Below are positions 9,801 through 63,819 of a stretch of DNA of 64,000 nucleotides, in pieces. The stretch is from Takakia lepidozioides (taxonomy: Eukaryota; Plantae; Bryophyta). The notes beneath the pieces were generated by a model. The model ran no database searches, was not told the origin of the DNA, and saw only the letters and a list, made by a program, of their open reading frames with translations. How positions within the stretch are numbered: position 1 is the stretch's first letter; each line of letters begins with the position of its first letter. The translations under genes and the position numbers were made by a program. The stretch covers positions 40,920,001 to 40,984,000 of the forward strand of contig CM060734.1 in the NCBI GenBank assembly GCA_030704615.1. Reading direction: 5' to 3'.

Positions 9801-10700
9801 GGGGTCTATGGTCACAAGGCTAGCGAAAGTCTTAAAAGTACTTTCTGTAAACTTCCCTTCTCATGGTCTATAAGATGTATGTGAGGATGACAGAGGAAAA
9901 AGAAGTGAACCTGGGCTCCATTAACACCCCGTGCATATGTGCCTGATTGGTTTGGGTCTTGTTTGGGGCCACAGACTGGACGGCTGACACTCAAGAGTGA
10001 TGTCTACAGTTTTGGAGTGGTCCTGTTGGAGGTCCTCACTGGCCGTAGAGCCCTCGATGACTCACAGTGCTTAAACAAACAGAATCTTGTGTCCCAAGTA
10101 TGTTTTCGTTAATTGTTTCTGTTTATGCCTAGCCAATTGTCTGTATTCTTCTTCTTCTTCCTCTTCTTCTTCTTCTATCCATGTTGCTCTCTGCCCTTCT
10201 TAATAAGTAGTTGTCATTTGGAGCTATTCAAGTCTGTCAGCAAGATCCTCTCTCCTATTACAGGAGGCTCCCGAGAAACGAAATTAAATGAATTGAAATG
10301 AAAAGTACTACGTCAGTAGGAGGGAGGATGTATCTTGCTCACAGACAAGAAACGTTATTGTGCTCAGGAAAACATACAGCTTTGGGGACACATAACCCAG
10401 CATGGCCCCATATTGTAGAGAAATACAGAGAGAAATAGACAGTCCATAAAATTTATCTAAAACAGTTGTGTATGGTGGCAGGTGAGGGATTCCCTACAGA
10501 GGAGAAACAAGCTGCGCAAAATAGTGGACCTTGAGATTAGCCCTGAGAGCTTCTCCATGCATTCTATCAAAAAGTTTGCCGACTTAGCCTCCCGTTGTGT
10601 TCGAGAAGATGACAGCAGGAGACCTACTATAGCAGAGTGTGTGCGAGAACTAGAGATTCTGTGTCTGCAAGCAATGGAACACCAAAGGACAAAAATATAG
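6859..10700 (+). CDS. PBL28: Receptor-like cytoplasmic Ser/Thr kinase, PBL28-like; exons 6859-6922, 7195-7391, 7864-8062, 8540-8703, 9220-9324, 9975-10097, 10482-10700
   Basis: Spliced ORF MHF...AETWQ...[11 protein letters not shown]...VAIKQM...[20 protein letters not shown]...[11 protein letters not shown]...DFGLAK...[14 protein letters not shown]...[23 protein letters not shown] and GTFGYFDP match Arabidopsis PBL28 as recalled. All junctions are GT-AG and in phase. Confidence 0.88.
8890..8975 (+). mobile_element. Short 3'-end copy of LINE family B (kinase intron)
   Basis: tttgttccggccaaactggg...tatggccacaaggctac...tgagtaca matches the 3' UTR of the LINE at 50388-51737. Confidence 0.8.
9378..9842 (+). 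mobile_element. 5'-truncated, diverged LINE family B copy (kinase intron)
   Basis: Encodes [10 protein letters not shown]...[11 protein letters not shown]...CPMC..PEDKIHF, homologous to DDLKGLPTLGTRLKFKLRAGSLP...CPFCGQSEDSIHF of ORF 50735-51523, followed by the same 3' UTR. Confidence 0.8.
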
Positions 10701-12153: not shown

Positions 12154-14023
12154 ATGGGTAGGGTGCAAAGCCTGTTAATCATAAATGTTTTATTACTTCT
12201 TGCAAGTGTGTCAAACGCTAAGCATCATTGGGGGACAGCATCTGAGCTATCAGTGAATTTTTACACGACAACCTGTCCCAACATGGAAAGCATCATTCAG
12301 CATGTTGTAGATTCACAATTCCTGCGAGACCCGAAAAGTGCAGCTGCTGTTGTTCGTCTTTTCTTTCATGACGCCTTTGTGAATGTAAGCCCTGTATTGG
12401 TCAATCTCACCCGTTAGGAAGAGTGTAATCTTCTTCCACACGGTCGCGCCTGTATTGGAAGAACTCTCCCTTGATTTTGCTAACTTCTTCGTAGCTGTCC
12501 ACTGCACTCGATCTTTGGCCGCGCCCCCAAATAACCCCTGGGCAATCCATTATGATTGATCCATAGCTTTGGATTGTCTTCGACCCCAGCGCCATGTGCT
12601 CGATTACATTCAATCTTTGGACCCCCCCTTCCCTGTTTCAGTTTATGGTGAACATATATGTGTGTTTGCATGTTGTCATCTTTGGTTCAGATATACAGTT
12701 CATGGAGGCCCTGTGGCAGGTCGTTTTCAAACTGTATGCAGCTTGTATGTTGATATATACGCATCTGGGTTACTGCAGGGTCCTGATGGCTCCATCTTGA
12801 TTGCTTCGACGCCAGAAAACTCTGCTGAGAAGGATGCAGATCCAAATACATCTCTAGGTGGCGATGGATTTGAGACAGTTGCCAAAGCCAAAGCAGCTCT
12901 CGAGACTGAGTGCCCTGGTGTCATTTCATGTGCTGACATTTTGGCCATTGCTAACAGAGACATGCTTGTTAAGGTCAGTAGTCTAATCGGGGAAGCTGGC
13001 TAGCCCAACTAGTTTCAAGATCAATTCCAGAAGATCCTTACAGTTGATTCTGAAGCTGCTCAAGACTCTAGCTAGTGTCCGTCCAAACGAGCTCCACCTG
13101 CTCAATATAGAACCACTTGAAAGAAGGGTTAAAACTTAAGCCTGCAATTAGAATGGCAATTTGTTGACTGCACGCTTGGCGTCATCTAATCTTGAGCTAA
13201 TCTTGCCTCTGTTGATATGAAAACAGACTGGCGGCCCATTCTTCAATGTGAGCAAAGGCCGTAGAGATGGACGAGTGTCACAGAGTTCACAAACATCAGC
13301 TAATTTGCCAAATTACAAATAATGTCAATCAGCTCATCGCTGTTTTTGCTGCAAAGGGGCTGTCTCAGATAGACATGATTGCTCTCTCTGGTAATGTAAA
13401 ACCTTCTCCTGTCCCATTGGTCTCGTTTACTACAGCAGATACTGATTTTCATTTGCATGCCTCAGATTTGATCTTCTACACATTTAGAACCAGTTGTGGT
13501 TTCTACAGTCTGAAGATTCATTCTAGTATTCACAAATCCCAATTGAAAAGGGAAACACTTCAATCGACATTAAACTGACATGTACACATGAATTGTGGTG
13601 GATATATGCGTCTCGAACATTCAGGTGCACACACCATTGGCTCCTCACATTGTAGATCGTTTGAAAGTCGTCTCTATCCTGAAGTCGATGGCACTGAACG
13701 CTGATCTAGCTCAAAGGCTGAAGCGAGCATGCCCTCAAACAGGGGGGGACCCAAGCACAACGGAGCCTTTTGACTCGCAGACACCCACAAAATTCGACAA
13801 CACATACTATCGAGACCTTGTAAATGGACTGGGACTTTTGTCGTCGGATGAGATCCTCTTTTCTGACAAGCGCACGCGTGGAACGGTCAAAACTTTCGCC
13901 AAACATCAACCAGCCTTCTTCAAAGCTTTTGTCGCTGCAGTCACCAAAATGGGAAGCATCGATGCTCTTACTGGCAGTCACGGGGAGATTCGACTAGCCC
14001 TCGACTGCGCATCAATCAACTGA
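12154..14023 (+). pseudogene. Class III secretory peroxidase with two frameshifts; exons 12154-12384, 12779-12973, 13227-13390, 13625-14023
   Basis: Signal peptide, FY..TCP, RLFFHD, ECPGVISCADILA, GRRDG, ALSGAHTIG, TPTKFDN.YY, GLLSSD, GEIR. Exon 3 is 164 nt and shifts frame near 13315; exon 4 shifts frame near 13693. Confidence 0.85.
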
Positions 14024-16628: not shown

Positions 16629-19600
16629 AGTGGTATCAGAGCCAGGTTTGCGATCGGGGAGAACAGATCGTGAGTTTTGGAATTTCTAGAAATTGGCTAA
16701 TTGTGTGAATGAGCCAGATCTCGTTCGGCTCTGTGAGCACACACCCTGGTGACGACGATCAGGATAGTGAAATGGCTGGAGACCGTGAGTGCTCAGATGC
16801 GGCCAGTCTGCACCGAGCTTCAGATCGCGAACATGGGAGTCAGTTGTTTTCCCAGCAGCAGATGGAGGCCTTAGGTACTTTGATTCGATCTGAGATACAG
16901 AAATTGGCCCCTGCACAAGCTCAAACTAAAAAGCGATCTAGGGATCTGCCTATGAGTGAGCCACTGAATGAGGACGAATCTGAGGCCGATTCCCATGAGG
17001 CCAAGATGAAAAGAAGCAAGGATGTCACTAGGGAGATCAGAATATTGGTGAAGTTGCCAGAATTCTATGGTAAGCCATCTGTCAAGCCCGAGGAAATATT
17101 GTCTTTCCTGGATACATTAGAAGAGTTCTTTGAGGACGATTATTCAGAGGAAGCCAAGATACAGACAGCTGCTCTACAGCTCCGTGATGCCGCCAAGCTG
17201 TGGTGGTCGCGCCAGAAGCAGGAACGTCGTGAACACAAGAAACCACATGTGGATAGTTGGGCTATGTTTAAGACACTGTTCTTAGCCCACTACCTACCTG
17301 GCGACTATGCACACAAGATGAAAGTTGAATTGTTCAGGCTGAAACAGGAGACTATGAGCGTGGGAGAGTTTAAGACGAGATTTGAAACCCATGCCAGTTA
17401 TTTCCCCTCGTTGAGTGAAGAGGACATAGTTGATTTTTTTGTTGATGGCCTCAGTGATTCTCTCAAATTTAAGGTCAAAGCCCACAACCCTCGTACCGAG
17501 GCAGAAGCATATCGTTTGGCTTGTAATTTTGAGAACAAATTGAGGGCACAACGTTCTTCGAATTTTGCTCGTGGCACGGCAGAGTTCAAGCCTAGATCAT
17601 CTGGTCCTTGGCAGTCACCAGCGAAGAGAGGGAATTGGAAGAGGTTTAAACCATTTAAGAAGGTGGGGGATCAAACTATACGGAGACCGCCAATGAGGGC
17701 TTCTCCAAGGCTCAGTTTCAAAGAGCATGAAGAACACAGGCGTAAGGGTTTGTGTTTCTTGTGCCATGAACCCTGACACAGAGCTGCTGAGTGTATGAAG
17801 TACCCGAATAATCGTCAGGCTCGACAAACAGCCGCCTTGACAGTTGAAAGACCTACAGAACCTTGTGCGGTTGTTGAAATTGGGGAGAAGTTAGGACAAG
17901 AAAGAAGGAAAGGTCTTAACGTGCGGATTTCTGCAGCTATCATTGGAGACCAAATAGAGCATGACCCCAGTGTGATACGGGTTCAGGGGAGAGTGGCTGG
18001 AATTCCCACTCAAGTGCTGATTGATACAGGCAGCACTCATAACTTGTTGTCAAAGGATTTTGCTGACAAGTTGGGACTAGTTCAAGAAGACATGCAACCC
18101 TGTCAAATCTTGTTACCAGATGGTGGCGTGGATTCTACGCACAAACACATCCCAAGGGTACCGATGGTCATGCAAGGAGTACAAACTATGGCTGACTTTG
18201 AGGTCTGGGAGGGAGCTCGGTACGACTGCATCCTTGGCATGCGGTGGCTGGATCCGGTTGATGCTGTGGTGGCTTGCAAATCCGGACTGGTTAGTGGTAC
18301 CTTGCCCAACGGGAAGGGATTCAATATCAAAGGTACTAGAGCTCTTCCCAATGTACCTGTCTTGTCAGCTATTCAGATGAAGAGATGTATGCGGAAGGGA
18401 AATGCTCAGCTTTTTACTGTTAGCTTGCATCAGATCTTGGAAACAAATCAGGGAGAAGGGAAGTCACATCCTAGATTTAGCCTGATCCTGAATGAATATA
18501 AAGATATGTTTCCTGATGAGCTCCCTGGGATGCCCCCTGAACGGGAGGTTGATCATGCTATTGAGTTGATGTCAAATGCTGTACCGGTTGCAAGGGCACC
18601 GTACAGGCATTCAATTGCAGAAAGCGAAGAGTTAGAAAAGCAGTTGAATGACCTGTTGGAAAAGGGGTATATACGTCCAAGTAAATTCCCTTGGGGTGCC
18701 CCTGTAATGTTTAAGAAGAAGAAAGATGGGACTTTGAGACTGTGTGTGGACTATAGATGGTTGAATAAGGTCACCATCAAGAATAAGTTTCATTTGCCTC
18801 GTGTGGACGATTTGTTTGACTATCTATATGGGAGTCAGGTTTTTTCAAAACTTGATCTTCGGTCTGGATATCATCAGATACGGATCAAGAATTCTGATAT
18901 ACCAAAGACAGGATTTCGATCTCGTTTTGGTCATTACGAATTCTTGGTGATGTCATTTGGGCTCACGAATGCTCCAGCAACATTTATTCATCTGATGAAC
19001 TCTCTGTTCCAGAAATATTTGGGGAAGATGGTCCTAGTCTACATGGATGATATACTAATATACTCGAAGTCTGAAGAAGAACATGAACTGCATTTACACT
19101 TGGTTTTAGACATACTGAGAGAGAACCATCTGTTTGCTAAGAGGAGCAAGTGTGAATTCTTTGTAGACCACATGGATTACTTGGGATTTTACATTTCCAA
19201 AGATGGAATCTCAATTGATCCTAAGAAAGTCCAGACAGTGGTTGATTGGCCTAAACCAAGTGATAAGACTGAGATCAGAAGCTTTATTGGGTTTGCTAGC
19301 TTCCTACGGAAGTTTGTTAAATCTTTTTCACAGATTGCAACCCCATTAACTGACCTGCTTAAGGACTCGAGTCCTGTAAGCTTGAAGGATGTCTGGACAA
19401 GAGAATGTGACAACAGTTTCGAGAAATTGAAGTTTGCCTTAACACATGCTCCTGTACTAAAATTGCTCGACCCTACGAAGGGAGCAATAGTGTTGTGTAC
19501 TGATGCAAGTGATCTTGCTATTGGAGCTGTGCTGATGCAAGATGGGCAAGTGATTGCCTACGAATCTCGAAAGATCAGTCCAGCAGAGAAGAATTACCCA

Positions 19601-20739
19601 ACTCATGAAAAAGAACTGTTGGCAATAGTTCATGCTCTGAAGATATGGAGACATTACCTACTTCCAGTTGATTTTGTGATAGAAACTGACCATCAAAGTT
19701 TGAAATACTTGACCACACAACCTCATTTGAGTCAGACGCAGATTAGGTGGTCAGAACTGCTTCAGCAGTTCCATTATGACCTAAAGTATGTCAAGGGGAA
19801 AGAGAATGTAGAAAGAGATATTCAGAATCCATGGTCTGCCTCGGGAGATTATTTGTGACAGGGACTCAAAGTTCACAAGTCATTTTTGGATTGACTTGTT
19901 TAAGAAATTGGGAACCAAGGTGAAACTGAGTACGGCCTTTCACCCAGAAACAGATGCCCAAACAGAAAGGACCAACCGTACAATTGAAGATATGTTGAGG
20001 ATGTACGTTGGTGAAAGACAGTCATCTTGGGAACAATATATGTATATGGTGGAATTTGCTTATAACAAGCATTTCCACAGTGCCATTGGCATGAGCCCAT
20101 TTGAAGCTTTATATGGACGAGATTGCTTGGCTCCTGCTTCGCTTATTACACCACCATCAAATGTGCAGAGTGTAAATGACAGAATCAAAGAGATCCACTC
20201 TGTCCTAGATCTGGTGAAGCGTAGTATACAGGCTGCACAAGAAAGGGCAAAGTTCTTTGCTGATAAGCACAGGACTTTTCGTGAATTTGCCATTGGTGAT
20301 ATGGTGTTTTTGAAAGTTACACCTAAAAGAAGCAATCTAACACTTGGCAAGTGTTATAAGTTATCACCAAGATTTTGTGGCCCGTTTAAAATCCTGGAAC
20401 GCCATGGCACAGTGGCCTATGAGTTGGATTTGCCTCCAACATGGAAGATCCATAAAACTTTCCATGTCAGCCTCCTCCAGAGGTATATGTCAGACCCATC
20501 ACACATCTTGCCGATGTTGCCTCAAGCCATGAATGATGGTCAGCTGATGGCTGAACCCGAAAAGATTCTAGAAACGCGAGTGAAGCACCTGTGCAACCGT
20601 TCTTGGAAAGAACATTTGATTAAGTGGTTGCATTACCCAGAGACAGAAGCTACTTGGGAGAAAGAAAATGAATTGACATTGAGTTACCCCTCATTTTTCT
20701 GTCATTGAGGACAATGACCTATCTTTGGGAGGAGGAGTT

Positions 20740-36462: not shown

Positions 36463-38406
36463 ATTTTCAGATTTCAATCAGACTGAAGCTTGTTCTCTAC
36501 TGTTTCACATCTGATGTGTAAGCAGTACAACTTGAAAACCAGAAAGCATGGCAGTGATGAGTTTATACGAAACTCGTGAGAAGGGAGAGAGATGAGTCTC
36601 ACACATTGAACTCCATGGAATTGAAATTGATAGGGGAAAAGTTGATGATGATCGATCCGTGAATGTAATTTTAATTACGATTTATAGAAAATGGGGAACT
36701 AATTAACATTCATTAATTCTATATAGTTGTGCATGGGCCTGTGGGTCTGGGGTTCAATCCGCTGTGGTTTCGTCTTGGGGGCTTGCCTGCTCAGAAAGAG
36801 GGTCTTCTGAGATGTGTGATTAGCTACTTGCCCCTGTCTATGAGAAGCCATGGTTTCTGTGTGACTCTAAGATTCTGGTAGCTGTGTGTGTACAAGGGTT
36901 TGATAGAGAGCAGCTTTAGTACACACCAATCACACCCTCGTTTGTTGAGGTGAGTTTGCCTCGCAGTAAGCAAATCTTCGGAAGTGTGTGGGGTTTTTTA
37001 TGTCAAATTTGTGCCGACCTATGAAATGTTGCATCAGGCATACCAAACCGTCGGAGATCCGATGGTGGGACTTGTAATGTGTATGATGACATTTGTTTTT
37101 TTGAGAAATCCTACGATGTAAGCTTTATATAAGACCCAAATGAGACGATTTAACAAGAACCTCCAAGTTCGTGGAGAAATCGAACCCCATTAAGAGAAGG
37201 AAATGTAAGGACAACAAAGGAAATCAAACCGATCTAGCATAACCTACTGCCTAAAATAAATCAGACAACAAGAACGAAGGTGGGTCAGAAAGAGCCGGGA
37301 GGTCAGATGAAGGTGCTATGACACTTCTAGCCAATAAGGGCCCAGGTTTGGTTTGTTGGTGTGAAGATTAGAGGGTGGTCCAGGAATTAACTAGGGTCCA
37401 GGAATCAACTAGGGAACAAGGGAAAGTCTTTATTAACCCCTAATGGACGAGGCTGTTTTTGGTGGGCCCACTCCAAAACAGCACATACCCTCACGGATGA
37501 GGATATATCTCCCAGCTAAGAAACATCCACAGGGATGAACCGTATGAAAAGGACGCTACCTACCTCATGCACCTGCTGTAAGACTTTCAGCCCATTTCAC
37601 CATGTCATTACGAAGATTATAACAAAATGGTAAGCTCTAAATCTGTAGTGTATTCCAATTTTAGAGGGAAAAATTGGTTTGACCAGGCAGTTGGACCGAA
37701 AAAATATTTTTTCCTTGCAAGACCCCAACCACATTCCAATTCTCAGGCACCTAAAGCAACTTGCCCCAAATTTGCAAAGCAGAATTCCAAAATCTACATA
37801 GGGTTCCTTTGTATGGGAAAACAGGGGGGTCAAAAAGCACTATTTGCTTCAATTGACCTGTAATTCAGCCATAGGGGTCGAAATTTTCATTGGAACCAGA
37901 ATTCCAACGGTGGAATTGTTCCTCCTATGATTTCCTACTACCTCCAAAAAGAATTTCTGAATTCTAATCAAAATGCAGGCAGAGATTTCTAAGTAGGTGT
38001 ATTTCTACTTGAATCCCAGCTCAGGCCATGTATTGCCTGAGCCGGTAGACAATTCCGGCTACAGAAAGGGGGCTACGTCACCGATTGACACAGAGAAAAC
38101 TCGGGGGACCCAAAATCGACACCCAAAAAAAAGCTCGGGAACGCCCGACGTTTCGGCGTTCCACCCGAAAGGCAACTGCAAAATACTAACCCCAACTAAC
38201 ACCTCGTTTCACACGGCGTCACGCAATCCTGTGCTCCCTAAAAGACTCCCACAACTCCCCACAACAACCCCTGTTTCAACTCCCCAATCGAGTGGCCATC
38301 CAAGCTCCCGTGACTCCTGGTTTTCTCCCCTTTGAATGTAGTCAAAAACCCACCACACACCACCACGAAGACATGATCCACGAACTGGGGGGAGTTGAAC
38401 CCCCAT

Positions 38407-38409
<3 letters not shown>

Positions 38410-38440
<31 letters not shown>
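38410..38440. repeat. Poly-C tract (~31 nt) inside the piggyBac
   Basis: Read directly. Confidence 0.9.
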
Positions 38441-38442
<2 letters not shown>

Positions 38443-39539
38443 GCAGCATCAGCACCCCCCAAAACCACAACCAGCAAGCATGACTGTTTTGCCCCCCGCG
38501 CCCCCCAAAACTGTGAAACCACCCAAACCACGCACCATGCCCAACACTGAAGGACCCCCATCACCTCCACATCCCCTCAACCAGCAGCAGCAGATCCCCA
38601 TCACCCCACAGCCTGTGAACCATCACCAGCCCTTCCCCATCCCCAAAAAGATCAAATGAGAAAGAAGAGAACACATGAAAAGAAGCCTGAGGGCAGACTC
38701 TCATCGCAAAGCGGGATAGATGAAGAGGTCCACCCCCCTACTCCCAAAACTGTCCATCAAAAAGAGCAAAGCATGACCCCCATAAAAAATGGAATGCTCG
38801 ACATTGGAAAAGGCCAAATGTAAATCTAGATCATTCAGGAACCCATGACCCCACACTCTCGATCCCATACAAGGTAGGGAAACCTCAGTGGACGTCACAC
38901 AAACAAAAAACATGAGAAGAACCCATAAACACCAAAAGATCAAAGAGAACAAAAACCCCACGCCCCACGAACCACAGGCCATCCACAAGCCTAGAAAGAT
39001 ACTGTAGAGAAAAACAAAGAGAAAGACAAAAAAGGCAAAAGAGCGCAAAGACCAAAGCAGCAATCAGCTTCTGGGTAAAAGAAGAGAAAGGGAAACACAA
39101 AGACAAGGAAGAAAAGAGTCAGAAAGGCAGAATAAGGGTGTGAGGTAAAAAACAGCATGTGGGAAGGCACAAGAAGCAGGGGGGCAAGCAAGCCAGGGAA
39201 GAATGGTGAGAACGAACTGAAGAAAAGACAAAAAGAGCTCGCCGTGGTGGTGTGAGGCATTGATGCACAAAAGGTAACTCTCTCTTCTCAATAAAGTGTG
39301 GTGGTCAATGTTGTCAGTGCAGAAACCCTGTCAAACCCAATAGGAACAGCCAGATTTAATTGTAGATGGGTCATGGACCCGACGTCCCCTTTGATCTCCA
39401 TTGCAGAATGAAAGATATACGCATTAACTAGCGTGGGTATCAATAAGGAAAAAAAAAAGATGAGGAAAAACTTCTTTGTGCGCAGCTGCAAGCTGTACGC
39501 ACCCCTAACTGGTCCTGCACATCCACCCCTTCGCATATA

Positions 39540-40720
39540 CGTTTGATATTGCACATGTGCAGGTACGATGGCACAGGCACCTTTGGTTTCCCACAAACGG
39601 CGTACAGTCACATGGAGAGGAAGGCTGCAAGCTGGCCTAGCTGCAGTGATCGCAAGTAAGAATACACCCTTCTTGTCCCCCAACAGACACAGCAGCCACA
39701 CTCTGTCCTGGACTCGTGCATCCTGTACCAGGGATGTGCCGGCCCGAAGCTTGGGCAGCGTGGATTTTTTCATTTTCAGCAAAGAGGGAGGGAGGTTGGC
39801 TTGCTGTTCACTCTTAGCCGTGTCAGGGTCTAAGTGCCCAAGGCCGAGTTTGGCCATGTCATATGAAGCTGGAACCCTGTTAAAGTAAATATCGGTCACA
39901 ATGGTCATGGCCCAAACCATGCAGCCCGTCGCCCGACCGGGTGACCACATCATAACCTTCTCCCTTCCCACTTTTCTGGCCTCTCGCCCTGCTGGCCCCC
40001 TACATTCTTACTACATACACCTGAAAAGTCGTAGACATATGAAGTTCTCCGAGTCAGCCAAGGCCCACGCCGGGATGGCCCCATTTGCAGGGGTGCGTTC
40101 TTAGGCATGGGTTTTTTTCCTAATGGGGAGTACTTCCCCTTGTAACGGAGATCATCACCTCGTCGACAGTCACCATTTTGTTCAGATTCTAGAAACTTTT
40201 ACACACCTTCCACAATCTCCTCACACACCCACCTAAGCTTTCCGAGCTTATCATAATCCGACTCTTCGATCTGCCACCACGTGGTGTTGTCAACAGATGC
40301 AAACAACGGAGTATGGCCTCATACCTAGGACAAGCGAAGAATGTCTCCGAGTGTTTACCAGTAAAATCGTGTTTTGGGGCAACTTCTTCTTTCATGCCCA
40401 TGACATTACCCGACTCCAATCCAAGCCCTGAGCTAACAGGAACAGTGAGCTCTTTCCACCGAGGCCCCCCACAGTGCCCGTACCGAAAGGTTCAGCAGCA
40501 TAACGATTGGACTCCCTACATATTCGCCCAAGCACCTGTCGCCTCCAAAACAAACCAAAAACCAAATAGGATGTGATAGCCTTCATTTCAGGCAAAGGTG
40601 CAGGGACCGAGGTTTGAGGGCCAAAAAATGCAGCTCTATCACTCACAAAGTCAGGAGCCTGCGTTGGTTTCCCACGTCTTCGCCTTGAACATCTCCACAA
40701 AATCGGCCGAGATTTCCTCA
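39540..40720 (-). pseudogene. Degenerate piggyBac (PGBD/DDE_Tnp_1_7-like) transposase
   Basis: Read across many frameshifts: FGLFW...RICRESNRYA, LRAWIG...MGMK, RYEAILRCLHL, DYDKLGKLRW, VTVDEVMI-RYKGKYSPIR, WALADS...YVYDF, TIVTDIYF (second catalytic Asp region), then a Cys-rich tail (CCVC...CDHC). The third-Asp region appears deleted. Confidence 0.85.
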
Positions 40721-42768
40721 TCCATCACTCCATATCAACCACCCACCTCGTTTTCCATTCTGCTTCGTCAGCAGAGGCGTCGCCCATGTACCCATCGTCA
40801 CCCTCAAATCCCTCGTCCATGTCGGAGGAGGCCTCATCATGGCCCAAAACAGATTAGAAGACCCCTCACCAAAGGAACCATGCACCAATGTTGGGATGCA
40901 TGTCCCCCAAAGCGCCCTAAAAACAATACCGACGGCAAGCATGCTCCCAGCACCCAGAGGCCCGCCAACACATCCCACAACAAGACCCGAATTCACACTC
41001 CCTTATTTTTTTTCTCCTCACACACAGAGCCTTGGGAGGTGCTGTCACACTTGCATGAACCAACCTCTTTGCACGAGCCAACTCCTTCAACGCCTGACTG
41101 TGGCGCATCGGGCCAAACATCATCTCTCACAACAGAATTCACAACACATCACTGAACCCCTCCTTATCACCTCCTCTCTTCTCTCTCTCCAACCAGAACT
41201 AGAGCCACCTGACGTCTAAACAGAAAGCGAAAATTGTGAGGACGGGGGGCGAGGCCAACGATTGCGAACGGCGGTGGAGGCAAACTACGAGGAAGGCAGG
41301 AGACAATACACCCAAAATATTACCTTGCACTGCTCGGGAGTGCAGTGCTGCTCCTCAAGCGCCCACTTCTTTTAATAACCTCCACGACAGCTGCAAGCTC
41401 GGGTGGGGGGCACGGTGGCTCAGCACAAGCAGGATCGTCTTCCTCTTTGTGCCATACGAATCCCTGATACCGACAGAGATCACAGGAAATGAATGCAAGC
41501 CCTCACGGTGAATCAATGCAGATGGCATATCTTCCCCACTCACAGGATGATGGATGTACCTCGGCGAATTTCGTAACTCCTCCAAAACCAGCTGCAAATG
41601 AAACCCAACACACCACCACGCTCCCCTGCAACCATCCCCTAACACACAAAACACAGAGCCCAAATGCATAAAAGCATTTCACAAAACGACATGCAAGAAA
41701 AAATGACAACTTGCATTACAATGAAAATTCGGCAGGGCGACAAGAATCTAAACGCCAAACACTCAGCCCTAACAGCTGCGTAATGCAATCACACCCCGAG
41801 CTCTAATGTCTAGAACACACAGCAGGCGAACGGAATAGCTCCCCGACCGCCGCTTCGAGCCTGGGAGAGGTAAGTCACCATGACCCGAAAATGAGCCCAG
41901 AAATACAACACTCCCCTACGAAACGAATGCGGGCGATCCATGGAAGATCAAGCAAAACATGCACACAAAAGCGCCAAGGAAATGCGAGAGGGGCCACGAT
42001 TTGCAAGCTCCAGGAACCCAGACTCTGTGCGCTTAGGGTGCAATAAATTCTGTCCGGCGCAAAATCTCAAGGGCTACAACTTTTGTTCAGGGCCCATCTT
42101 CATCCAGAGTCATCCAAGGGGCCCACTGACGGTCGAAATATCCAATCGACCCGAATCAGGTCGACTCGTCCATTAGGGGTTAAGGCTAATATGTAGCCCC
42201 AAGAAGGTACGGAAAACTGCAGTCCCCATTCATGGGGACTTTAATAGGATGGTTGTAGTGGGACCAGCAGCAGCCGTCACCAGCAGGCTTGGTGTCTCCT
42301 TGGGAAACAGAGCTACGGCCGTCATTTCTTTCAAAAATAGTAGCATGGATTTCCATCGTTCGCAGTCAATTTGGAAAATCAATGGTTTCGCCACATGACC
42401 TTGAGATCTATAGCACGCATTTCTACAAGGCATCTTCCCTTATTTCAAGGCTTCAAGATTTGGAACGTGCGGATGTGATCGGTGGACTGGCAGAAGCTTC
42501 TTTACATTCAAAACCTTATGAAGCTTCGCATGAAGAACAATAAGATACATCACCAATAAGGGCCCCGGGTTTGTGTGAGGTGGGAAGAGTGGACGAATCT
42601 CAAGTTCCGCATGCAGGGAACGGTCAACAACCCGAGTACATTCCAGTTTGTGTGCAACGTTCCCTTACTGATCATGTGTTCTGATCTGTATAGTTTAGCT
42701 TTCATGGCATTCGGTTTGCAACGTAGCACGTTCACTGGGCAGGCAGATGATCAGAGTTCACACGTTTG

Positions 42769-44810
42769 GAGTGAAGACCACCCTATGACACTTTTTTAAC
42801 TTTTTGGATACGTTTAATCAAGTTACATCATTTAATATACAAATGTGCGTTACACCATGACATAGTTAATTAATACCAGCAGACCATTAAATGATGAGAG
42901 AGAAGACACCAAAACTAAGAGTCGCTTCACCATTCAACTATTGCCTCATTTTGGCATTGGGCCATATAAAACCGAGATAAACCTATATGTCTAGGGTATG
43001 GGTTGGTGGTTTTCGAATTTGTGGTTTCAAAATATTGTCACAGTAACTCTTTTATGTGGTGGTGCATTTCTCCCACTAAATCATATGTATATACATAGAT
43101 TTATTTATTTATCCGTCAATACCAACTATTGATAACTCATATGGATTTGCTAGATATTTTGTTTATTGCCTGAAAATATGATTTTATTATGAGAAATACT
43201 AAAAAATATACATACTATACAATATTCTCATAATTTGAAAATAACATGTGTATCTTATTGCAATGTATCTTATTGACTCAAGTAGCTTATTGACGGCCGT
43301 AGTAATAAGATACACTTATTTCAAAAATGTAACAAATCATATTTATTAAGATTAAATTGTGATTTGGTCATAAAATGAATTACGTTTTAAATTCAATCAT
43401 ATATGAAGTAAGGTATAGTAAATCGTGCACTACGGTTATTGATATGTACACAATATGAACATCCTACATCCCAACATATGTTGAAATGTTATTTTTATCT
43501 TTTTATAAATAACAAAACTCGAGAATTATAATTACTGAACTGAAAGTTGCATGAATTTAATATCCGTAAATAACTTGTTACTATGAAAAGATACTAATAA
43601 ATAAGTCAATGTTTTGTACAGATCGCGGGTCAAGCTTGTTGAATTGATAAGTACCGATGACGTTATTGTTGCAAAAAGATTATTGGTTTGTGGAGGACAG
43701 TCATTCTTTGAAATCTATCCCACATGCACGGTCAGAACCAGGTTTTGCGGAAGTCTATTTGGCAGATCCTAAAGAGATTGTTGCTTTGCACGAATTCATC
43801 TCATGGAAAGAACGTCAAGTAGCAAGACTCCAACACATTACATCAAACTTAGATGTCATCTAAGAAACAATGAAATTTGTCAAATATTTGGGTCAAAGCA
43901 CACTAATAGGACCCATAAAGGATATCACAATTGTTTTCCAGCATATATGGCGTAATCGATCCAAATTTAGGATATCGAGTTCAGTATGAAACCACATATA
44001 CATTATATCATTGGAAAGTCTTTGAAGTACTTGTCATGCCCATATAAAGTTTCTTGTAATTTGACAATTTTAAGGGGTCATAAAGGAGTCTTGAATAGCA
44101 CAAGGTTCAAATGTCCCAAAATGTTGTAGTCCTTTAGGACTCATTTTCACAACATAACATGTGAAGGTCCTATCAGGGATTTTCATGTGCTTATGTAAAG
44201 TATGGAAGAATGCAAAAAAGACAGTAGACCTGCAAAACCAGAAACACCCATTCACATAGGAATTTTCTACCACGCGGTATTCATAATTTAGGAGCACCAA
44301 ACTTTGATACTACTAAACCTCAAAATTTAAACATAGTTCTTTCACCAAAAGTGTTTAGTTGTTGAAAAAGAAGAAGGTCATGTCCCTGAAATGGCTACAA
44401 GGTCCTCCAATTTTGAATTTGAGGCCAAAAATAGTTCTTACAAATAATATATCATTCATTGCAAATTATTTTAAAATTAAAAATATATCAAATAAACTCC
44501 TAAAAATTATACGAGCATCTGCAGCACTGAAGTAGGCATCAAACACATCAAACCCGGCCTGGATGCAATGCGGGGAAAGCAAATGGTGATAAACGGAAGT
44601 CGAGTTAGTATCGTAAACTCAAAATTAGCGGTGTACGAGCAAAATTGGAGGTGTACAAGAGGGTGTACGAGTATCTGATGGATGGGGTCAAGGTGCCCAC
44701 TACCATTTGTCAATTTCATCACGTTTTCATCGCAACATGTCATGTCTACGCGCCGCGGTGTAATGCGCCATCAGTCAAAATTTAGTCATTTTCAGGAGTG
44801 TCAGTGGTAC
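42769..44810. mobile_element. Possible AT-rich non-autonomous DNA element
   Basis: Sharp shift to AT-rich sequence starting GAGTGAAGACCACCCTATGACAC, with a partial inverse match GTGTCA-GTGGT at ~44798-44808. Confidence 0.25.
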
Positions 44811-46077: not shown

Positions 46078-48450
46078 TCAGTCTACCTCAAAGAGGTTTG
46101 CCTCTGCAATCAAGTCCTCATTCTCATCTAAGATGACTTCTTCCCTATCCAAAAACTCTTTCATGGAAGTACTAAAGCAACCAACTCTAGCATCATTTGG
46201 CCAATTCTTGACTACACTCACAAGCATATCAAGGTTTTCAATATTTAACCTGCACCGTCTCAAGTTTGTTATGACACCTGCAATACTAAAAACCCTCTCA
46301 GCTTCAATCTGAGATCCAACTATGCCCAAAATTAGCCGTGCCAAAAATTCCACATACGGAAAGAGAGACTCGTGTTCTTTCCACCATTTCAAAAGAGCCA
46401 CGCACTCACCTTCATTTATCTTCGTCCTTCTGAAATGTGATAGTTGTTCTCTCACCACTGTCAATGTCATGTCTTCATTGTGGTCATGCACACCAAATAA
46501 GGACATCTCGTCCATTGTGGCAGTGGGCTGTGATTGGGCCGAAGTATCCGGATGTAAGACCTTGAAACACTTTACCAAAAGAGGCTCTAACACCATACTA
46601 TCATATTGGGACACAATATGCAAAGCACGCTCTTTGCCCACATATTGTGATACCAATGACAACCCCTTGTAACGTGGGTCAAGCATAAGCGCGAGCATAT
46701 TGTGAGCTTTGCGCGATTGAAACCCTTCCAAAAAAGAAAGAAATGGTTCCAAGACATATACCACCTCTCGAGCCATCCGCCATTCCAACAATGTCAACTC
46801 TGTTGAGAAATCCCCCATGCAATGATCCACAGTTGCAGCCCCCCAGCACTACTTCCTCGCATGCGAATTGTTGTGGCAATGGCTGCATTAAGAGCATCGG
46901 ACAACAACCAAAATCCCCCAGATTGATTCATAATGCACTCATGAACCACAGGCCCTAGAACTGTAGAAATTGATTGGGCAATGGCCCACACTTGTGGACT
47001 TGGTATGCGAGATTGCAGTGCCAATGAGGTTTGCCTAGAGTAACAAGTGATTATGGCTTGCCTAAACTCCAAAGTCTCTTGGAAGAGGATCACCTTGGAA
47101 GCAAACCGTGTCTTCACCGGAGTCTTCAGTTTGCGGGGATGAATGCCGCTGTCCACACATGCCTTTGCCCATTCTTGTCTCCCTTTGCCACTTTTTTTTG
47201 TCCAAGTAATGGTTTTTTGCAACTCTGATTGGGCATTTTTTATAGAAACCGATCTCATATCTGCGCATACTTTTGCATCATTTGTTGCATACTGGCAACA
47301 CTTGGACATTGCATGCCCAAAAAGCTACCCACAAATGGAGAATCCAACCCCAAACACGCACATGAGACCACCGAATTCAAAGCATTGGTCAAAGTGGCCA
47401 AGTTACCTCCCTCATCTTTGACGTAAGCAATAATGCGAGTATTGAGGCCATACTTCACAAGAAGATTGTTGACTTGATGTGCCATGGCAGCCCCAGATGT
47501 GTCAGGTGTCTCAAACATGCCAAGAGTCACATGACATTGCTCCCACTGTTCATTAATAAAGTGCGCTATGATGACAAAAGTGTCAGTTCCCCCTCTTGAC
47601 ATCCACAAATCAAAACTCACGGAGCAAGTAGCACAACTTTGAAGAGATGGGGACATGTAGCGCTCTTTCGTCTTCTCTGCCAAGATTGGAATGACCTCAT
47701 TCACAAATGTCCGTCGAGAAGGGAAAACAATCCGAGGATTTTGCCTCAACACCATCCTTCTTAGCCAAGGGGATTCTACCAAAGACAGTGGAACCAACTC
47801 CTTTGCAATGAATAAGACTAAATCCTCATTGAACTGCTTCTGTTGATCATCATTTTGGTTGTATGGAGTGGAGCTCCTAAAAAAAGAAGCTATGTTTCCA
47901 GGAGTGGGGCCGGGCCTCTTTTTGGCTGGCCTACGGGCCTTCTCAGGTCCAAGATTTTCCCTCTCAATCCACCTACGCAAAACAATGTCATGTTCTTGAT
48001 CCACATGCTTTCGAAGGGCAGAGATACCATTGGTTTTATATAGGTCACAATGCCCTTCTTGCTTTCAGGAGTGACACCAACAGGATGACATAGAACACAC
48101 CTCATTTGTTGTGGATTTGTTATGTCCACTGGAGCAGAGTCTTTTGTTGCATAGAATGCCCATGTCGAAGCAGTGCGATTGTGGGGCTTCCAAAAATCCC
48201 GTTGTTTGTCAAGTACTGGGAGCTGCGCCTCCACATCCAACACCGTGTGTGATGGCGAAACTGTGGAAGATGACATTGCAGCCGAGGCTTGATGAGCTGA
48301 TGTAAATGAGGCTTCATGATGAGCATCCTCCGCAACATGGCACTCCACCAAAGCTCTCTCATTATCAACATTCATGTCAAGAACAACTTCCCTTTCTAGT
48401 TCATCGAAAATATTGGGCTCCATGACATAAAAAGCTTGTGGAACAACTCC
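46078..48450 (-). pseudogene. hAT transposase with three frameshifts
   Basis: BED finger (WAFY...RCVLC...RKHVDQEH), SFDLW, KDEGGN, TPVKTRF, LDPRYK and hATC domain (WWK...ERVFSIAG), split across ORFs 47890-48555, 47255-48004, 46794-47309 and 46078-46830. Confidence 0.92.
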
Positions 48451-50387
48451 TGTGTAAAAACAATGCAAACAAAGAATCCAAAAGGCATTTAATAATTGTG
48501 CACAACTCATATATTTACAACTAAAAATGTAAACAACTAAAAAAATAAAGCTCAATGAAAGGGAGTTACAGGCGGGTAATGGTGGCTGGTTGGCAGGTCC
48601 CTCCCTACTTTGGGCTCCCTCCCTCTCATGCAGAATCTGCTATAACAGAAGCCAAAGGGGCTATCTCATCAACCCCCAATTGTATCAAGAATTAAAAAAA
48701 TTTAAAGAAAGGGAAGATACTTACCAGTGATGATCAATGTGGGCTGGTTGGCGGGCCCCTCTTTGCTTGTGCTCCCTCCAATATAAAATCTACCATAGTG
48801 GAGCAAGGGCTATCAGCCCCTTGGTATATCATCAAAGAAAACAGGAAAAAAAAAAGAAAAAAAAAGAATGATGATCAATGATTACCATGGACCAAGGGGC
48901 CTAGGTTGCAGGTGGGCCCTCCTTGCTCGTCCTCCTAAACTTGTGCACCACATGCCATAGCAGAAAAGGAGGAAGCTGATTAGCTTCATGGTGAACTAAA
49001 GCTAAAACAGTAAAAAAACCAAAAGTGGTGGATGCTTACCAACGTCACTAACTCTACTTGCTACAGCATTGACATCCACTCGATTGCTTAGATCATTCTC
49101 TTTTGAAAAGCCCTCTTCAATAGCTGAACAGCACTTGGAGACGACTGGAAGACTAAATCACTGACAACCAAGACCAGGTTGACTTTCAAGTGAAGACAGC
49201 CAGAATGCAGTGCCACGTGGAGTAGCCAGAAACTATGAACGAGAGAGCCCCTGAAGGAGAGGATGGAAGAGACGGGGGATGGCTGCTCACATACCTCCTC
49301 TCGCCAGTCAACATTGTTCAAGATTCCCTGACACACAGCGAAAAGAGAACACCCTCGTACAAACCTGCATAAGCACCTTATTCAGCTCCACCTGTAGCTA
49401 TCCTACCATCCCACAATACAACTTCTTGGAAATGAACAGTGCGGAGACCCCTCACACAGGGTGAAAATCAATTCTGCCAATACAATAACCCACAGAATGG
49501 TGAACAAAAGAAAAGGGGGTTACCTCACTCGCTGCAAAACCTGGGTAAATCTGGAAGGAGCTCACTGAGTGCCCGTGGTTCAAACACATTTCCCGAAAGT
49601 ATGTGTTGCACCTGCCACATATACAGGAACAGTCAGGCGCCAAGGTTCTGTATAAATCTCTGTTGCACGATGAACAACATTGATCATGGCAATAGACACT
49701 GAGGCAAGGAAGCAACCTACTGTCATTACGCCCCAACCAACTTGCTATCCATTATGTGCTGCAAAAGTACAGATTGGTCATACAAAGCTAGCCTGGCTGT
49801 CATCCAGATTGTACAACTAAGCACCGTACAAGAGAGGGGCAGAAGCTGACCTCTTTCTGGGTTAATTCTTCTCGGTTGGTCTGAATTCATCTAGATTATG
49901 TAGCTAGCATTTGTTGACCAACTACAGCGCGAGGTGCAAACCTGCAGAATCTATCTCACTGTACAACCGATTTGATCTTCGGGGAGCAGCAGCAGTTGTG
50001 GTCTATTTCTTCGCTGCTCCAATATATTGTCCAGGTGACTTGATGTGGGCCATTCTGCACTTGCGCTGTCTGAGTCAATACACTTGTCTTGCTGCTCACT
50101 CTAGATAAGCAAATTACTCATAGGGCCCTCGTTCTGAACAGCACATGGGTAAGCGCATTGATCTTTCGTGTTATGGTGCAGGGGCATGCTCTCCGAGGTG
50201 GGATTAATCAGAACAGGAAGGTGAAGAGGGACGGGGAGGGGGTTCTGGAAGGCTAAGCTGCAGCATCAACTTGCACTGGCCTATTAACCAGGATTAGCCA
50301 TGCCAGACACAGACCCTGCCTGCAGGGGGGCCTTTCCCTCAGAGAGGGCGTACCTCACGCTGGTGAAGCCACGAGAGAAACAAGAGA

Positions 50388-58477: not shown

Positions 58478-61400
58478 TCAACGCTTCTTCCGCTTTTGAG
58501 GTCGCCCTTCGAACGCTGCAACTGCCTCGGATGCGTTTCCCATTTCTGAGGCACGCACCCAAGATGCCTCCACAAGATGATAGCCCTTCCATTTGACGAG
58601 ATACTCTGTTTCTCGGTTCTTGAACCTCCTCGACTTAAGTATTGCCTCCACCTCGTACTCAGGTTCATTTTCATGATCCAACAGCATAGGTGGCGGACGC
58701 AACACTTGCTGCCGATTCGGACGTGCTTCATCTTTGAAGTAAGGCTTCAAAAGGGAGACATGGAATACTGGGTGCACCTTGCTGTTTGCTGGCAGCTCCA
58801 ATTCATACACATCCTCATTCATAACCCTCCGAATGCGAAAGGGACCCGCATACGGAGGTACGAACTTCGGACTCATTTCCGGAGGTAGTCGAAAATTCTT
58901 GATGTTCAACCAGACCTCTGTGCCTGCCTCAAACTTCACTTCCCTCCGCTTCCGATTCGCCTGCCTTTCATACCGTTTCCTAGCTTTGGCAATGTTGTAC
59001 TTTGCGAGCTTCAACAAACGCTCGCGTTCTTCCAGTACCGCCGCTACTGCCGGTTCCTCAACGTCCTGGGCGGCCCAACTTGTCGGCACCAGAGGTGCTT
59101 TTCCATAGACCAACACAAAAGGGGAAACTCCCGTCGCGGAGTGTTCTGTGTTATTATAACAGAACTCTGCCGCGTCTAAGTGTTCCATCCAGTCTGATTG
59201 GTCTGCCGACACGTAATTCCGCAAGAATTGCTTCACTACGGAATTCACTCTTTCCGTTTGGCCGTCCGTCGTAGGTCGGAAGGCGGTGCTCATCTTCAGC
59301 CTCGTCCCCATCTTCTTCCAAAGTGCTCTCCAGAATTTACTCGTAAACTTTGGGTCGCGGTCCGAGACAATATCCTTCGGGACTCCATGATGCTTTAAGA
59401 CGTGGGCGAAGTAAAGTCGCCCTGTCTCCTGCGCAGTTGCCGTCTCCTTGGTGGGGATGAAATGGGCCATTTTACTGAACCTATCTACCACCACCATGAT
59501 TGCATCGAATCCTTTTGACAGCGGCATAGCAGTCATGAAATCCATCGAGACGCTTTCCCAAGTCCCCTCTGGAATCGGTAAGGGTTGTAACAGCCCCGCT
59601 TGCTTTTTATACTCGCTCCGGTTTTGTTGGCATGTGGTGCATGTCTTTACATACTCCTCTGCCTCCTCCCTCAGTTTGGGCCAGAAATACTCTTTCTTCA
59701 AGAGTGCCGCAGTGCGCTTGGCTCCACCGTGGCCCGCAAGCGGGCTATCATGGCATTCTCTCAAGAGACTATCCCTGATCCCTCCCTTTGGCACATAGAG
59801 ACGTTTTTGCTTATACCGGAGCAGTCCGTTTTGCAAGTGGAACTGCGATTTAACCCCCATTCTCAAGTTCTGCATCACGCACTTTGCCAGCTCATCCTTC
59901 CGGCAAGCCTTCCGGATCTTCCTTTGGAGCGCCGTCTCGCCCTTGTACACCAACCAGAGCTGCTGCTTTCTACTTAAAGCATCGGCCACCACATTGTCCC
60001 GTCCCGGTTTGTACTGGATATCCACGTCGAACACTGCCAAAGTATCTTGCCACCTAAGTTGTTTTGGGGACAACTTGGGCTGCGTGGCAAAATACTTCAC
60101 CGTGACATTGTCCGTGAACACCTTCACTGGGTTGGAACCAACATAGTGGCGCCAGAGTTCAAGGCAATGTACCACCGCCTTCATCTCTTTTTCGTGCGTC
60201 GGCCACCGTCGCTCCACTTCATTCAGTTTCTTACTTTCGTAAGCCACTGGACGTCCATCTTGCATAAGTACACCCCCAATTGCGAAGTCCGATGCATCTG
60301 TATGAATCTCAAACGGACGATCGAACTCCGGGATTTTTAAGACTGGAGCTTCCGTCATCCGCTGCTTCAATTCAGCAAAAGCTTGGCCACAAAATGTGTT
60401 CCATACCCAGACTTTGGATTTACACAGAAGGTCCGACAGTGGCCCCGCGATCTTGGCGAAATTTCTCACATACTTCCGGTAATAGGAGGCGAGTCCTAGG
60501 AAGGATCGCACTCCCGGGACCGAAGTCGGAGGCTCCCAGTCCAAGATCGCCCTCACCTTTCTGTCATCCATTTTGATCCCATCCTGTGTAATCACGTGCC
60601 CCAAGAACTCCACTTTTGTGACCCCGAATTCGCACTTTGAAGCTTTGGCATACAGCTTCCCTTCTCGCAATTTTTGGAACACCCTTTTGAGGTGCTCCAG
60701 GTGCTCCTCCTTTGTTTTCGAGTACACCAAGATGTCGTCGATGTACACGATCACAAAGTCATCCAACCACTCCTGGAAAAGGCTGTTCATCAGCGTGCTA
60801 AATGTCGCTGGTGCATTGGTGAGCCCAAAAGGCATCACCAAGAACTCATATGAACCATACCTTGTCCTGCACGCGGTCTTCTCCTCATCTCCTTCCGCCA
60901 CCCGAATTTGGTGATAGCCGGAGCGCAAGTCGATCCGGCTGAAATACTTCGCTCCTGCCAACCGATCGAAGAGGTCGTCGATCCTTGGCAAAGGGTACCG
61001 GTTTTTGATAGTCACCTTATTCAGAGCCCTGTAATCGACACACATCCGCAGCGTCCCATCCTTCTTGTCTGCAAATAGCACCGGGGCTCCGTAAGGTGAC
61101 TTACTCGGCCGGATGTACCCCTTTGACATTAGATCTTTGAGCTGAGTCTTCAGCTCGACCAACTCTTTGTGGCTCAACCGGTAGGGCGCCTTGGCAGGCG
61201 GTTCCGATCCCGGTATCACCTCAATTTTGTGGTCAACTCCTCTTCGCGGTGGCAAGCCGCTTGGTAAATCCTCCGGCATCACATCCTGGTATTTCTCCAA
61301 AATCCCCTTGATCCAATCTGGGCTCGGCTCCCCATCGCCTTCTCCTTTCACTTCTCTAATGTAAAGCAAAAACTGGGACTCGTGTGTCTCCTCCACGGCC

Positions 61401-63040
61401 CACTCCTTTGCTGATAGAAGGTTTATTCGCCCTCCCACGGATTTGGGCGTTTCCGACACTCGTAAAACCTCGCCACCATTCCCACATGGCAGCGTGACTA
61501 CTCTCTTGCGGCCATCTATGACCGCTCCGGATTTGCTCAAAAAGGTCATTCCCAAAATGAGATCCACTCCATCGATCTCGCAGATAGTGAAGTTCTCACG
61601 TCCCTCCCAACTCCCCAGTTGAAGAGGAACATCAAACGCCAACCTTGTCGCCAACTGAGGTTCTCCTTTGGCAGAGCGCACCTCAATAGAGGCCCCCACG
61701 TCACTTGTCGGGAGTCCCAACTTTCGCGCCGCTGCCGGCGTCATGAAGGAGTGCGACGCTCCTGTGTCCACCAACAACGACACATTAGTTCCGGATATTA
61801 TCCCATCCACGAACAATAACTGACTCCCTTTTCGTAAGGCGCCAGTTTCCTGATACAACTCACAAGAAAATTTGCCTACCTTGCAAGTCCTGGCGACCAC
61901 CGCTTCCACCAAGCGACTGATGGTATCTTCCGACAGCTCCGTGGTCGCCCGAGTCATGTTCAATTGCCGGGGCTTCGTGCACTTCTTGGCCATGTGCCCG
62001 GGCTCCCCGCAATTGAAACACACTCCATCAAAGGTCGCCTTCTGTCCGCCATAAGTCGCTCCACCCGCTTTTCCTTTCGAAGCACCGGGTGCCGCCTTGA
62101 CGTGTGAGGGACCTCCCTTCGATTTCCACGTGCCATTTTCGCCGCGTGGCCTATCCCACTTCTTTTCCGGTCGGGAGGAGTCACCTTCCCGCCGGGTCTT
62201 CTTGTGGTTCAGCTCCGTACGGCCTTGTTTCTCACCCCTAGGGACATCCGAGAAACATTCAGCTCTCTCAATTGCCTCGTTCAAAGTCTTGGGTGGCTTC
62301 TCCTCCAACTTCCGCCTAGCCCATGGGGCCAGTCCCGCCACAAAGTTGAAGACCATTTCTGGTTCTGCCATGTCCGCGACTTCGAGCAACAGCACATTGA
62401 AAGCCTGGACATACCCCCGAATGTCATCTGTTTGCTTCAAATTCCTCATCTTGTCCCGGGCAAGCCAGGATGCGTTGAGGGGCACAAACTGTCTCTTCAT
62501 CAATTCCTTGAACTCACTCCAGTTCAAGGTTTCCGGGCTTGGGCCTCGGTCGTGAAGGCGTTTCTGCCACCATTGTTGAGCATAGCCCCTCAAATAGGTG
62601 GGAGCCACTTCCACCCGATCCTCGTCACTCAACTTGGCCGCCCGGAAGTACTGCTCTAGCTCCAGGAGCCAGGTGTTGAGTGCCTTCCGGTTTCGAACGC
62701 CCTCGAAGGTGCCGGGTTCCTTAGGCTTCACCTTAAACTTTGCCTTGGTGGAAGTGGCATTAGCCGCCTTCAACACGTCTTTCAACGTCCCGCCAAACTG
62801 CGCCAACAACCCTTCCCAAAAGGCTGCCGGCATGGGAGGCATCTCTTGGTTTGTCGGAGCTCTCAAAGATTCCTCGGGCTCCGACTCCTCGGATTCCTCC
62901 CGCTCCTGAGCGGCCTCGTTTTCGGAAACATTAATCGCTTCCTCAAACGGCCGCCTCGGTGACACGTCGCCCCCATCGGGCTCACCGGGGTCATCATCTT
63001 TTGGGCCGTTCCGCTTTCGCTTCGGCTTGCCCGACCCCAT
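58478..63040 (-). CDS. Gag-Pol polyprotein (gag, CCHC, PR, RT, RNase H, IN, chromodomain), uninterrupted
   Basis: [48 protein letters not shown]...YLVKWKGY...SW. Confidence 0.96.
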
Positions 63041-63095
63041 GATGAGGCCAATCCCAAGGACGATCGTGTACTGAACTCTAAGCTCTGATACCAAA

Positions 63096-63819
63096 TGTCG
63101 CACACCTCAGTTCGGTAAACTCCCCTTCAAGTCATAGTTACTCGCTTTGATGCGCGCGCCTGACTCCCAACCTGGCCGCCGGGCCAACTTGGAGTTTCGG
63201 CTACTCACCGGGACATAACGGTCCCCTTCCGCTTCCCTCTAAACCCTCCACCTATTTGGGACTAGGAGAATTCCCTTTGGTAGATGGCAGTCCGGAACAG
63301 CTCCCCACTCTTTGGTCGCTTTCCGGCTCGCTCGCTTACTCACTAGTTTTTGGTCACCAACGGGCTTGCACCGTTCTCGGGGTTACTACTCCCTATATAT
63401 ACTTCTGTAGCTGTCCGCGGGGGTTTCATAACCAGCCATGCCATTTTATGGCGAACCACCACGAAAACCCTCGACTCCCGGTGGTGAGTCGCGGTGAGTC
63501 TTGGCCCACTCACCGCGGCCCCAATGGACCGTGATGAGTCCCAAGACTCCCCACGACTCCCACCTCGAGGTCTCCACCCCATGGTGAGTCCTATGCCACC
63601 CCCACTAAGTCCCACTAAGCTACCACCACCCCTTGTGGAGCCACCTCCACCGCAACCCGGTGTGCGGGGCTCCACCTAGTGAGCGCCTCCGCCTCCTTGA
63701 GTGCCTTGGGCACACAAGGGTGCTTCAGCCCCCCCTACCTATCGCCGCCGCTGCCCCCACCACAGGGGCAGCCCCTCATGTGTCCCGACCCCCTGCCCTC
63801 AAGGCAAAGGGCCGCGACA
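63096..63819 (-). repeat. 5' LTR of gypsy element 2
   Basis: Followed on the minus strand by TGGTATCAGAGC. Confidence 0.96.

Follow-up and report, generated by a model that had tools for sequence, protein, structure and literature searches.

The 64,000-nucleotide window analyzed here, positions 40,920,001 to 40,984,000 on the forward strand of contig CM060734.1 in the assembly GCA_030704615.1 of the bryophyte Takakia lepidozioides, raises the question of whether a land-plant chromosome carries a complete piggyBac transposon and in what state. A first-pass annotation, made from the letters of the window, had described a full-length element of this type at 37433–42183. The locus is, with high confidence, a cut-and-paste DNA transposon of the piggyBac superfamily that entered a plant chromosome at a TTAA site, has kept perfect ends, contains a dead transposase gene, and was probably moved in trans. 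The element is complete at its ends, the transposase remnant is preserved nearly end to end, and the copy is non-autonomous. "Full-length" is therefore accurate for the ends and the coverage of the transposase, but not in the sense of an intact element, as the gene is interrupted by frameshifts and stops.

Element ends and transposase identity

The element spans 4,743 bp (37437–42179), or 4,751 bp when both TTAA copies are counted. At the left edge, TTAA is followed by CCCCTAATGGACGAG (37433–37451); at the right edge, the exact reverse complement of this sequence is followed by TTAA (42165–42183). The perfect 15-bp terminal inverted repeats (TIRs) and the TTAA on both sides that the annotation had reported are thus read directly from the DNA. 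The TIRs are identical at 15 of 15 positions and begin with 5′-CCC at both ends. The 19-nt inverted pair formed by TTAA and TIR was the sole long pair with 100% complementarity that a repeat finder returned from the region. We calculate that about 6e-5 perfect inverted pairs of 19 nt would be expected by chance in a region of 5.6 kb. The 15-mer CCCCTAATGGACGAG has no further occurrence in the 64-kb window, where matches with three mismatches are found at the level of shuffled sequence.

The sequence GGGCCCAY recurs close to the termini. Four of its nine matches in the window lie within 90 bp of the element ends, and these sub-terminal motifs may represent candidate transposase-binding sites. 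Sub-terminal hairpins were also considered near both ends and dropped, their folding being no better than that of shuffles (z -1.07 and +0.13). A comparison of the element flanks with the rest of the window revealed no paralogous empty site.

The interior of the element contains the remnant of a transposase gene on the minus strand. The piggyBac motifs listed by the first-pass annotation were all located there, in the expected order and place and distributed over three frames: ESNRYA (40497–40514), RYEAILRCLHL (40294–40326), DKLGKLR (40232–40252), VDEVMI (40150–40167), YKGKY (40130–40144), WALADS (40050–40067), and VTDIYF (39882–39899). No single open reading frame (ORF) covers the whole transposase. 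The longest open piece on the minus strand is 239 aa long (39291–40007). In the ESM Atlas, its nearest clusters belong to the Pfam family PF13843 (DDE_Tnp_1_7) in 30 of 30 cases, with a top score of 0.95. A phmmer search with the same piece against 1.84 billion representative proteins gave eight matches at E<=1e-3, the best with an E-value of 1.7e-7. Six of the eight carry PF13843, among them the full-length, 720-aa protein P0006, which in turn matches the solved structures of piggyBat (E 6e-36) and Trichoplusia ni piggyBac (E 7e-25).

A profile search extended this set to 55 relatives, nearly all annotated with PF13843. The nearest proteins were drawn from ENA, JGI, and Logan assemblies and bear no taxon labels. 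When 25 relatives were aligned to the window by tblastn, they proved colinear with the minus strand between about 40838 and 39345. Two of the relatives, P0013 and P0017, were compared with the remnant by tblastn only and are likewise colinear. A hidden Markov model (HMM) built from 29 relatives matched the minus-strand frames with E-values of 3.8e-26, 1.6e-7, and 3.5e-4 and matched nothing on the plus strand.

The remnant was also aligned with a purpose-written frameshift-aware protein-to-DNA aligner, with shuffled and reversed protein queries as controls. Residues 107–717 of the 720 in P0006 align over 40954–39137, with 225 identities in 554 positions (about 41%). Raising the frameshift penalty from 12 to 20 and 30 lowered the score from 560 to 458 and 394; reversed or shuffled queries reached 100–127. 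Identity to the three relatives aligned in this way (P0006, P0009, and P0030) is about 41–43%. The TTAA duplication, the TIRs starting with CCC, and a remnant homologous to PF13843 together bear out the assignment to the piggyBac superfamily.

Decay of the transposase gene and probable mobilization in trans

The transposase gene is heavily damaged. Along 40954–39137, the number of frameshifts in the alignment grows from four under the harshest penalty to 10 under the middle one and 17–19 under the lightest, and 5–6 in-frame stops are crossed as well. Examples of the frameshifts lie near 40256, 40077, and 39906. Introns were rejected as the cause of the frame changes, which lie only tens of bases apart. 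The annotation had suggested that intact members of the lineage could provide a plant-native transposase. From the present copy, with its many frameshifts and 5–6 stops, no usable enzyme is to be had.

The catalytic triad is recognizable in spite of the decay. Three aspartate codons (DDD) reside in the blocks VTVDEVMI, IVTDIYF, and EGVDVQDQ. Their contexts VDE, VTD, and GVD match every relative that covers those positions, and the same motifs align with the DDD residues of piggyBat. Because the three codons lie in three different frames, no single product can hold the whole triad.

The fate of the C-terminal region is less clear-cut. In the relatives, a Cys-rich domain follows the pattern R..C..C...C..CG...C[FY]...H. 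The alignments of the remnant to three relatives all reach about 39140. Over 39137–39341, however, most of the cysteines are replaced and the HMM of the relatives finds no match. The "Cys-rich tail" of the first-pass annotation is consequently retained only in part, as a possible remnant into which the frameshift-aware alignment continues (to about 39137).

A domesticated, piggyBac-derived host gene, comparable to the PGBD genes of animals, would be another source of transposase-like sequence. Animals and ciliates have often domesticated piggyBac transposases (PMC5381638). In the window, however, there is no open reading frame but a series of frameshifts and stops, and the element has kept the TIRs and target duplication that domesticated genes normally lose. 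This reading was rejected on account of the broken frame, and we regard it as scarcely credible.

The transposase of piggyBac elements binds and pairs both ends and cuts at the TTAA/CCC junctions via hairpin intermediates. Reinsertion at a new TTAA duplicates that site, and excision restores a single TTAA. Because its gene is a pseudogene, the window copy cannot move by its own enzyme. Its mobilization in trans is probable as judged from the sequence, because not one of the 38 terminal bases is altered in an element whose gene has accumulated many indels. A transposase supplied by an intact relative would have moved the dead copy to its present site. The copy could still be mobilized if the enzyme of an intact relative is made in this genome.

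The terminal bases may instead have been spared by chance. In that case, the element would be an old, once-autonomous copy that decayed in place and stayed put after the loss of its gene. No more than 38 bases would have had to escape change, which is not very unlikely at the lower bound of 4–10 frameshifts, and no other copy with the same lesions was found in the window or in the JGI metagenomes. Against this, 17–19 frameshifts and 5–6 stops in about 1.8 kb imply heavy neutral decay, which usually touches terminal bases as well. Decay in place is thus a possible account, though a rather unlikely one.

Several results weigh against a piggyBac element that was mobilized in trans. As to mobilization, our own arithmetic indicates that, at about 5% divergence since insertion, 38 untouched terminal bases survive by chance in about 14% of cases. 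The 19-mer composed of TIR and TTAA had no match in the JGI metagenome contigs and hence no second copy there, and a related-locus search with the 239-aa piece in the JGI metagenomes yielded no confirmed relative. As to family, ten single-frame pieces of the minus strand failed to match Pfam PF13843 even at E<=1, and phmmer with two single-frame pieces matched no PDB chain. Because single-frame pieces miss both Pfam and PDB, family membership rests on transitive and frameshift-aware evidence. The piggyBac profile match on which the first-pass annotation had made its proposal depend was accordingly obtained with the HMM of the relatives and the frameshift-aware alignment, but not with single-frame Pfam searches. 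An exact look-up of a 227-aa ORF in public assemblies returned no record.

Flawless ends around a dead gene raise the further prospect that this plant has, or had until recently, a live piggyBac transposase that recognizes ends of the CCCCTAATGGACGAG type. We consider this doubtful. If true, the clade, whose intact members combine a DDD transposase with a small helper-like ORF upstream and a B3 gene within the ends, would represent a cut-and-paste system native to plants that is TTAA-specific, leaves no footprint, and has accessory proteins of its own. We know of no functional description of such a system in plants.

Intact relatives and the origin of the element

The first-pass annotation had also anticipated intact relatives, and these exist in public data with open, DDD-bearing transposases, in samples including ERZ24794443, ERZ24794497, and SRR18067278. 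The locus L006 contains a complete 9.2-kb element (631–9809) that is bounded on both sides by TTAA|CCCTTAAAAGAGGTTGC and encodes an open transposase of 899 aa. A second locus, L005, is 75% identical to L006 in the transposase region and ends in ...AAGGG|TTAA at about 10906. The end of the window element matches that of L005 at 10 of its 13 first bases.

Both relatives carry two further ORFs. The first is located 3′ of the transposase, within the element ends, and encodes a B3 domain (8779–9690, plus strand, in L005; 7970–8566, plus strand, in L006). The Pfam B3 model matches the two ORFs with E-values of 2.6e-7 and 4.2e-7, and their products are 50% identical to each other (blastp 4e-46). B3 is known as a domain of the plant lineage, and a B3 gene inside piggyBac ends may have been captured from a host or may serve as an accessory factor. 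The second ORF lies upstream of the transposase (554–1102, plus strand, in L005; 1251–1706, plus strand, in L006) and is conserved at 65% identity (E 3e-66). It includes the stretch RYLWYR.AARILGWCDRRRFPD, which we take to resemble the C-terminal domain of P2X7 receptors. At E<=0.01, the upstream ORF had no Pfam match.

Neither gene was recovered from the window element. A tblastn search with the B3 ORFs of the relatives found no B3 gene, and the helper ORF left no significant trace, its alignments scoring 80 and 58 against up to 69 and 75 for shuffles. The window element is part of a piggyBac clade resident in plants, and both of the extra genes that intact members of this clade contain are missing from it.

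Another decayed piggyBac of the same clade is present at L004:5004–6519, on a 579-kb eukaryotic contig (ENA ERZ25073694). Its transposase is split among several short called genes, one of which matches PF13843 with an E-value of 1.1e-6.

These relatives bear on how the lineage came to be in a plant. Instead of persisting vertically for a long time, it may have been acquired horizontally, with a fungus, alga, protist, or animal as the donor, and published surveys can be cited in favor of this. A 2025 mining paper reported more than 200 piggyBac clusters common to broad taxonomic groups, as well as one group that comprises fungi, land plants, and algae (PMC13461360). A 2017 survey contained no plant piggyBac (PMC5381638), and when 1007 plant genomes were screened in 2025 for 17 superfamilies, among them piggyBac, the recently active autonomous elements all fell into seven of the others (PMC12973397). 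On the other hand, the significant matches among the 1.84e9 proteins form one clade only, and phmmer found no animal piggyBac at E<=1e-3. An Atlas search with P0006 returned only generic arthropod and chordate clusters of PF13843, which are uninformative about taxonomy. Moreover, because the intact members of the clade hold a plant-type B3 gene within their ends, the B3 gene favors a long residence of this clade in plants and speaks against a recent arrival from animals. The heavy decay of the window copy further argues that any transfer was not recent. Taken together, horizontal transfer appears unlikely, and long residence in plants is favored.

Internal regions and genomic context

The transposase remnant is flanked by about 2.9 kb of internal sequence without an assigned gene (Table 1). 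The 5′ region (40955–42164) corresponds to a 5′ untranslated region and/or to a poorly conserved N-terminal part of the transposase. Open frames of either strand in these two regions were compared with Pfam, and 36500–43500 with Rfam, and nothing meaningful emerged; neither region is similar to sequence elsewhere in the window. The 3′ region contains a 31-nt poly-C run (38410–38440) and a 39-nt tandem repeat (38556–38641). The strands differ strongly in composition over 38000–42000, where the plus strand is A+C-rich with an AT skew of about +0.2 to +0.3 and a GC skew of about -0.17 to -0.2. Over 38400–39340, T makes up only 12% of the plus strand and the observed/expected ratio of CpG is 0.25.

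Table 1. Positions of the element, its parts, and other features in the 64-kb window
Feature	Position	Strand	Remark
TTAA target-site duplication, left copy	37433..37436	.	sequence
Terminal inverted repeat CCCCTAATGGACGAG, element 3′ end relative to transposase	37437..37451	+	sequence, repeat finder
3′ internal region	37452..39136	-	about 1.7 kb, no recognizable gene
Sub-terminal palindrome GTGGGCCCAC	37462..37471	.	contains GGGCCCAY
Possible remnant of C-terminal Cys-rich domain	39137..39341	-	most cysteines replaced
piggyBac (PF13843-type) transposase pseudogene	39342..40954	-	colinear with full-length relatives, three frames
Third catalytic Asp codon, in EGVDVQDQ	39521..39523	-	short stretch out of frame with both neighboring blocks
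Second catalytic Asp codon, in IVTDIYF	39891..39893	-	
First catalytic Asp codon, in VTVDEVMI	40162..40164	-	
5′ internal region	40955..42164	-	about 1.2 kb, no recognizable domain
Two sub-terminal GGGCCCAY motifs	42090–42097 and 42119–42126	+	
Terminal inverted repeat, element 5′ end relative to transposase	42165..42179	-	exact reverse complement of left repeat
TTAA target-site duplication, right copy	42180..42183	.	
Host-gene fragment, protein kinase	about 9226–9240	+	DFG motif
Host-gene fragment, peroxidase	about 13624–13641	+	GAHTIG motif
Chromodomain Ty3/gypsy retrotransposon	16709–20708	+	split into gag, protease-RT-RNase H, and SH3-chromo pieces
hAT-type transposase remnant	46078–48555	-	Dimer_Tnp_hAT E 8e-12; run of overlapping minus-strand ORFs
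Chromodomain Ty3/gypsy retrotransposon	58478–63103	-	single uninterrupted 1541-aa gag-pol-chromodomain ORF

The window is rich in transposable elements, with two chromoviruses, reverse-transcriptase (RT) fragments lacking other retroelement domains, and a hAT element. With its uninterrupted ORF, the chromovirus at 58478–63103 looks young. A distance of 4 kb separates the piggyBac element from the hAT remnant to its right. Outside the transposable elements, open frames of at least 75 aa match protein kinase, peroxidase, Dof, F-box, and alpha/beta-hydrolase families. The host sequence appears plant-like in its Dof domain, its chromoviruses, and its peroxidase, whose GAHTIG motif we take to be typical of class III plant peroxidases. 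The PLAC8 and CYP neighbors named in the first-pass annotation were not recovered: neither is present among the open frames of at least 75 aa outside transposable elements, a length at which short exons could be missed.

The open frames directly adjoining the element have no recognizable family, as might be expected if an assembly chimera or a contaminant had been joined to plant sequence. The same TTAA beside both perfect ends, however, is the signature of transposition and not of a mis-join. The plant-type genes and the intact 1541-aa chromovirus ORF in the window indicate good assembly quality, and the plant B3 gene of the relatives likewise speaks against foreign origin. A chimera or contaminant is thus very improbable.

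Comparison with known piggyBac systems

With this element, a plant piggyBac lineage that has received little study gains a further, dead member, not its first. Plant piggyBacs are barely documented, but members from land plants were already reported in 2025, which limits the novelty that the first-pass annotation saw in the element. That report (PMC13461360) mentions them in one sentence and is the sole published description of plant piggyBacs as a group that we found. In RepeatMasker tables, a fern has a few fragments labeled piggyBac, and a liverwort has none.

The window copy adds a well-delimited plant example with exact ends and an exact duplication, and its relatives point to intact plant-type elements. 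Its value is that of a family marker and a possible substrate for cross-mobilization, not of an enzyme source, and the family to which it points is more interesting than the copy itself. piggyBac is valued as a gene-transfer tool for its scar-free excision. To our knowledge, only the insect enzyme has been used in plants so far.

Counterparts from the nearest transposase clade that was found are L005 and L006 (ENA sample ERZ24794443; P0013 and P0017), which share with the window element the TTAA/CCC ends and long internal regions outside the transposase. The end sequences are CCCTTAATGCAGG in L005 and CCCCTAATGGACG in the window. However, L005 and L006 measure at least 9 kb and encode open DDD transposases of 899–939 aa, and they also carry the upstream helper-like ORF and, within the ends, the B3-domain ORF. 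At 4.7 kb, the window copy is smaller, its gene is dead, and it has neither extra gene.

Two well-characterized systems, T. ni piggyBac (PDB 6X67/6X68) and Myotis lucifugus piggyBat (PDB 9C0F), resemble the window element in the TTAA duplication, the short TIRs starting with CCC, and a PF13843-homologous transposase whose DDD motifs VDE, V[TV]D, and GVD occur in the same order. The window element differs from them in its land-plant host, its dead gene, and its stretch of internal sequence without an assigned gene. Its transposase remnant is too decayed and too distant for a frame-by-frame match to Pfam or to the solved structures.

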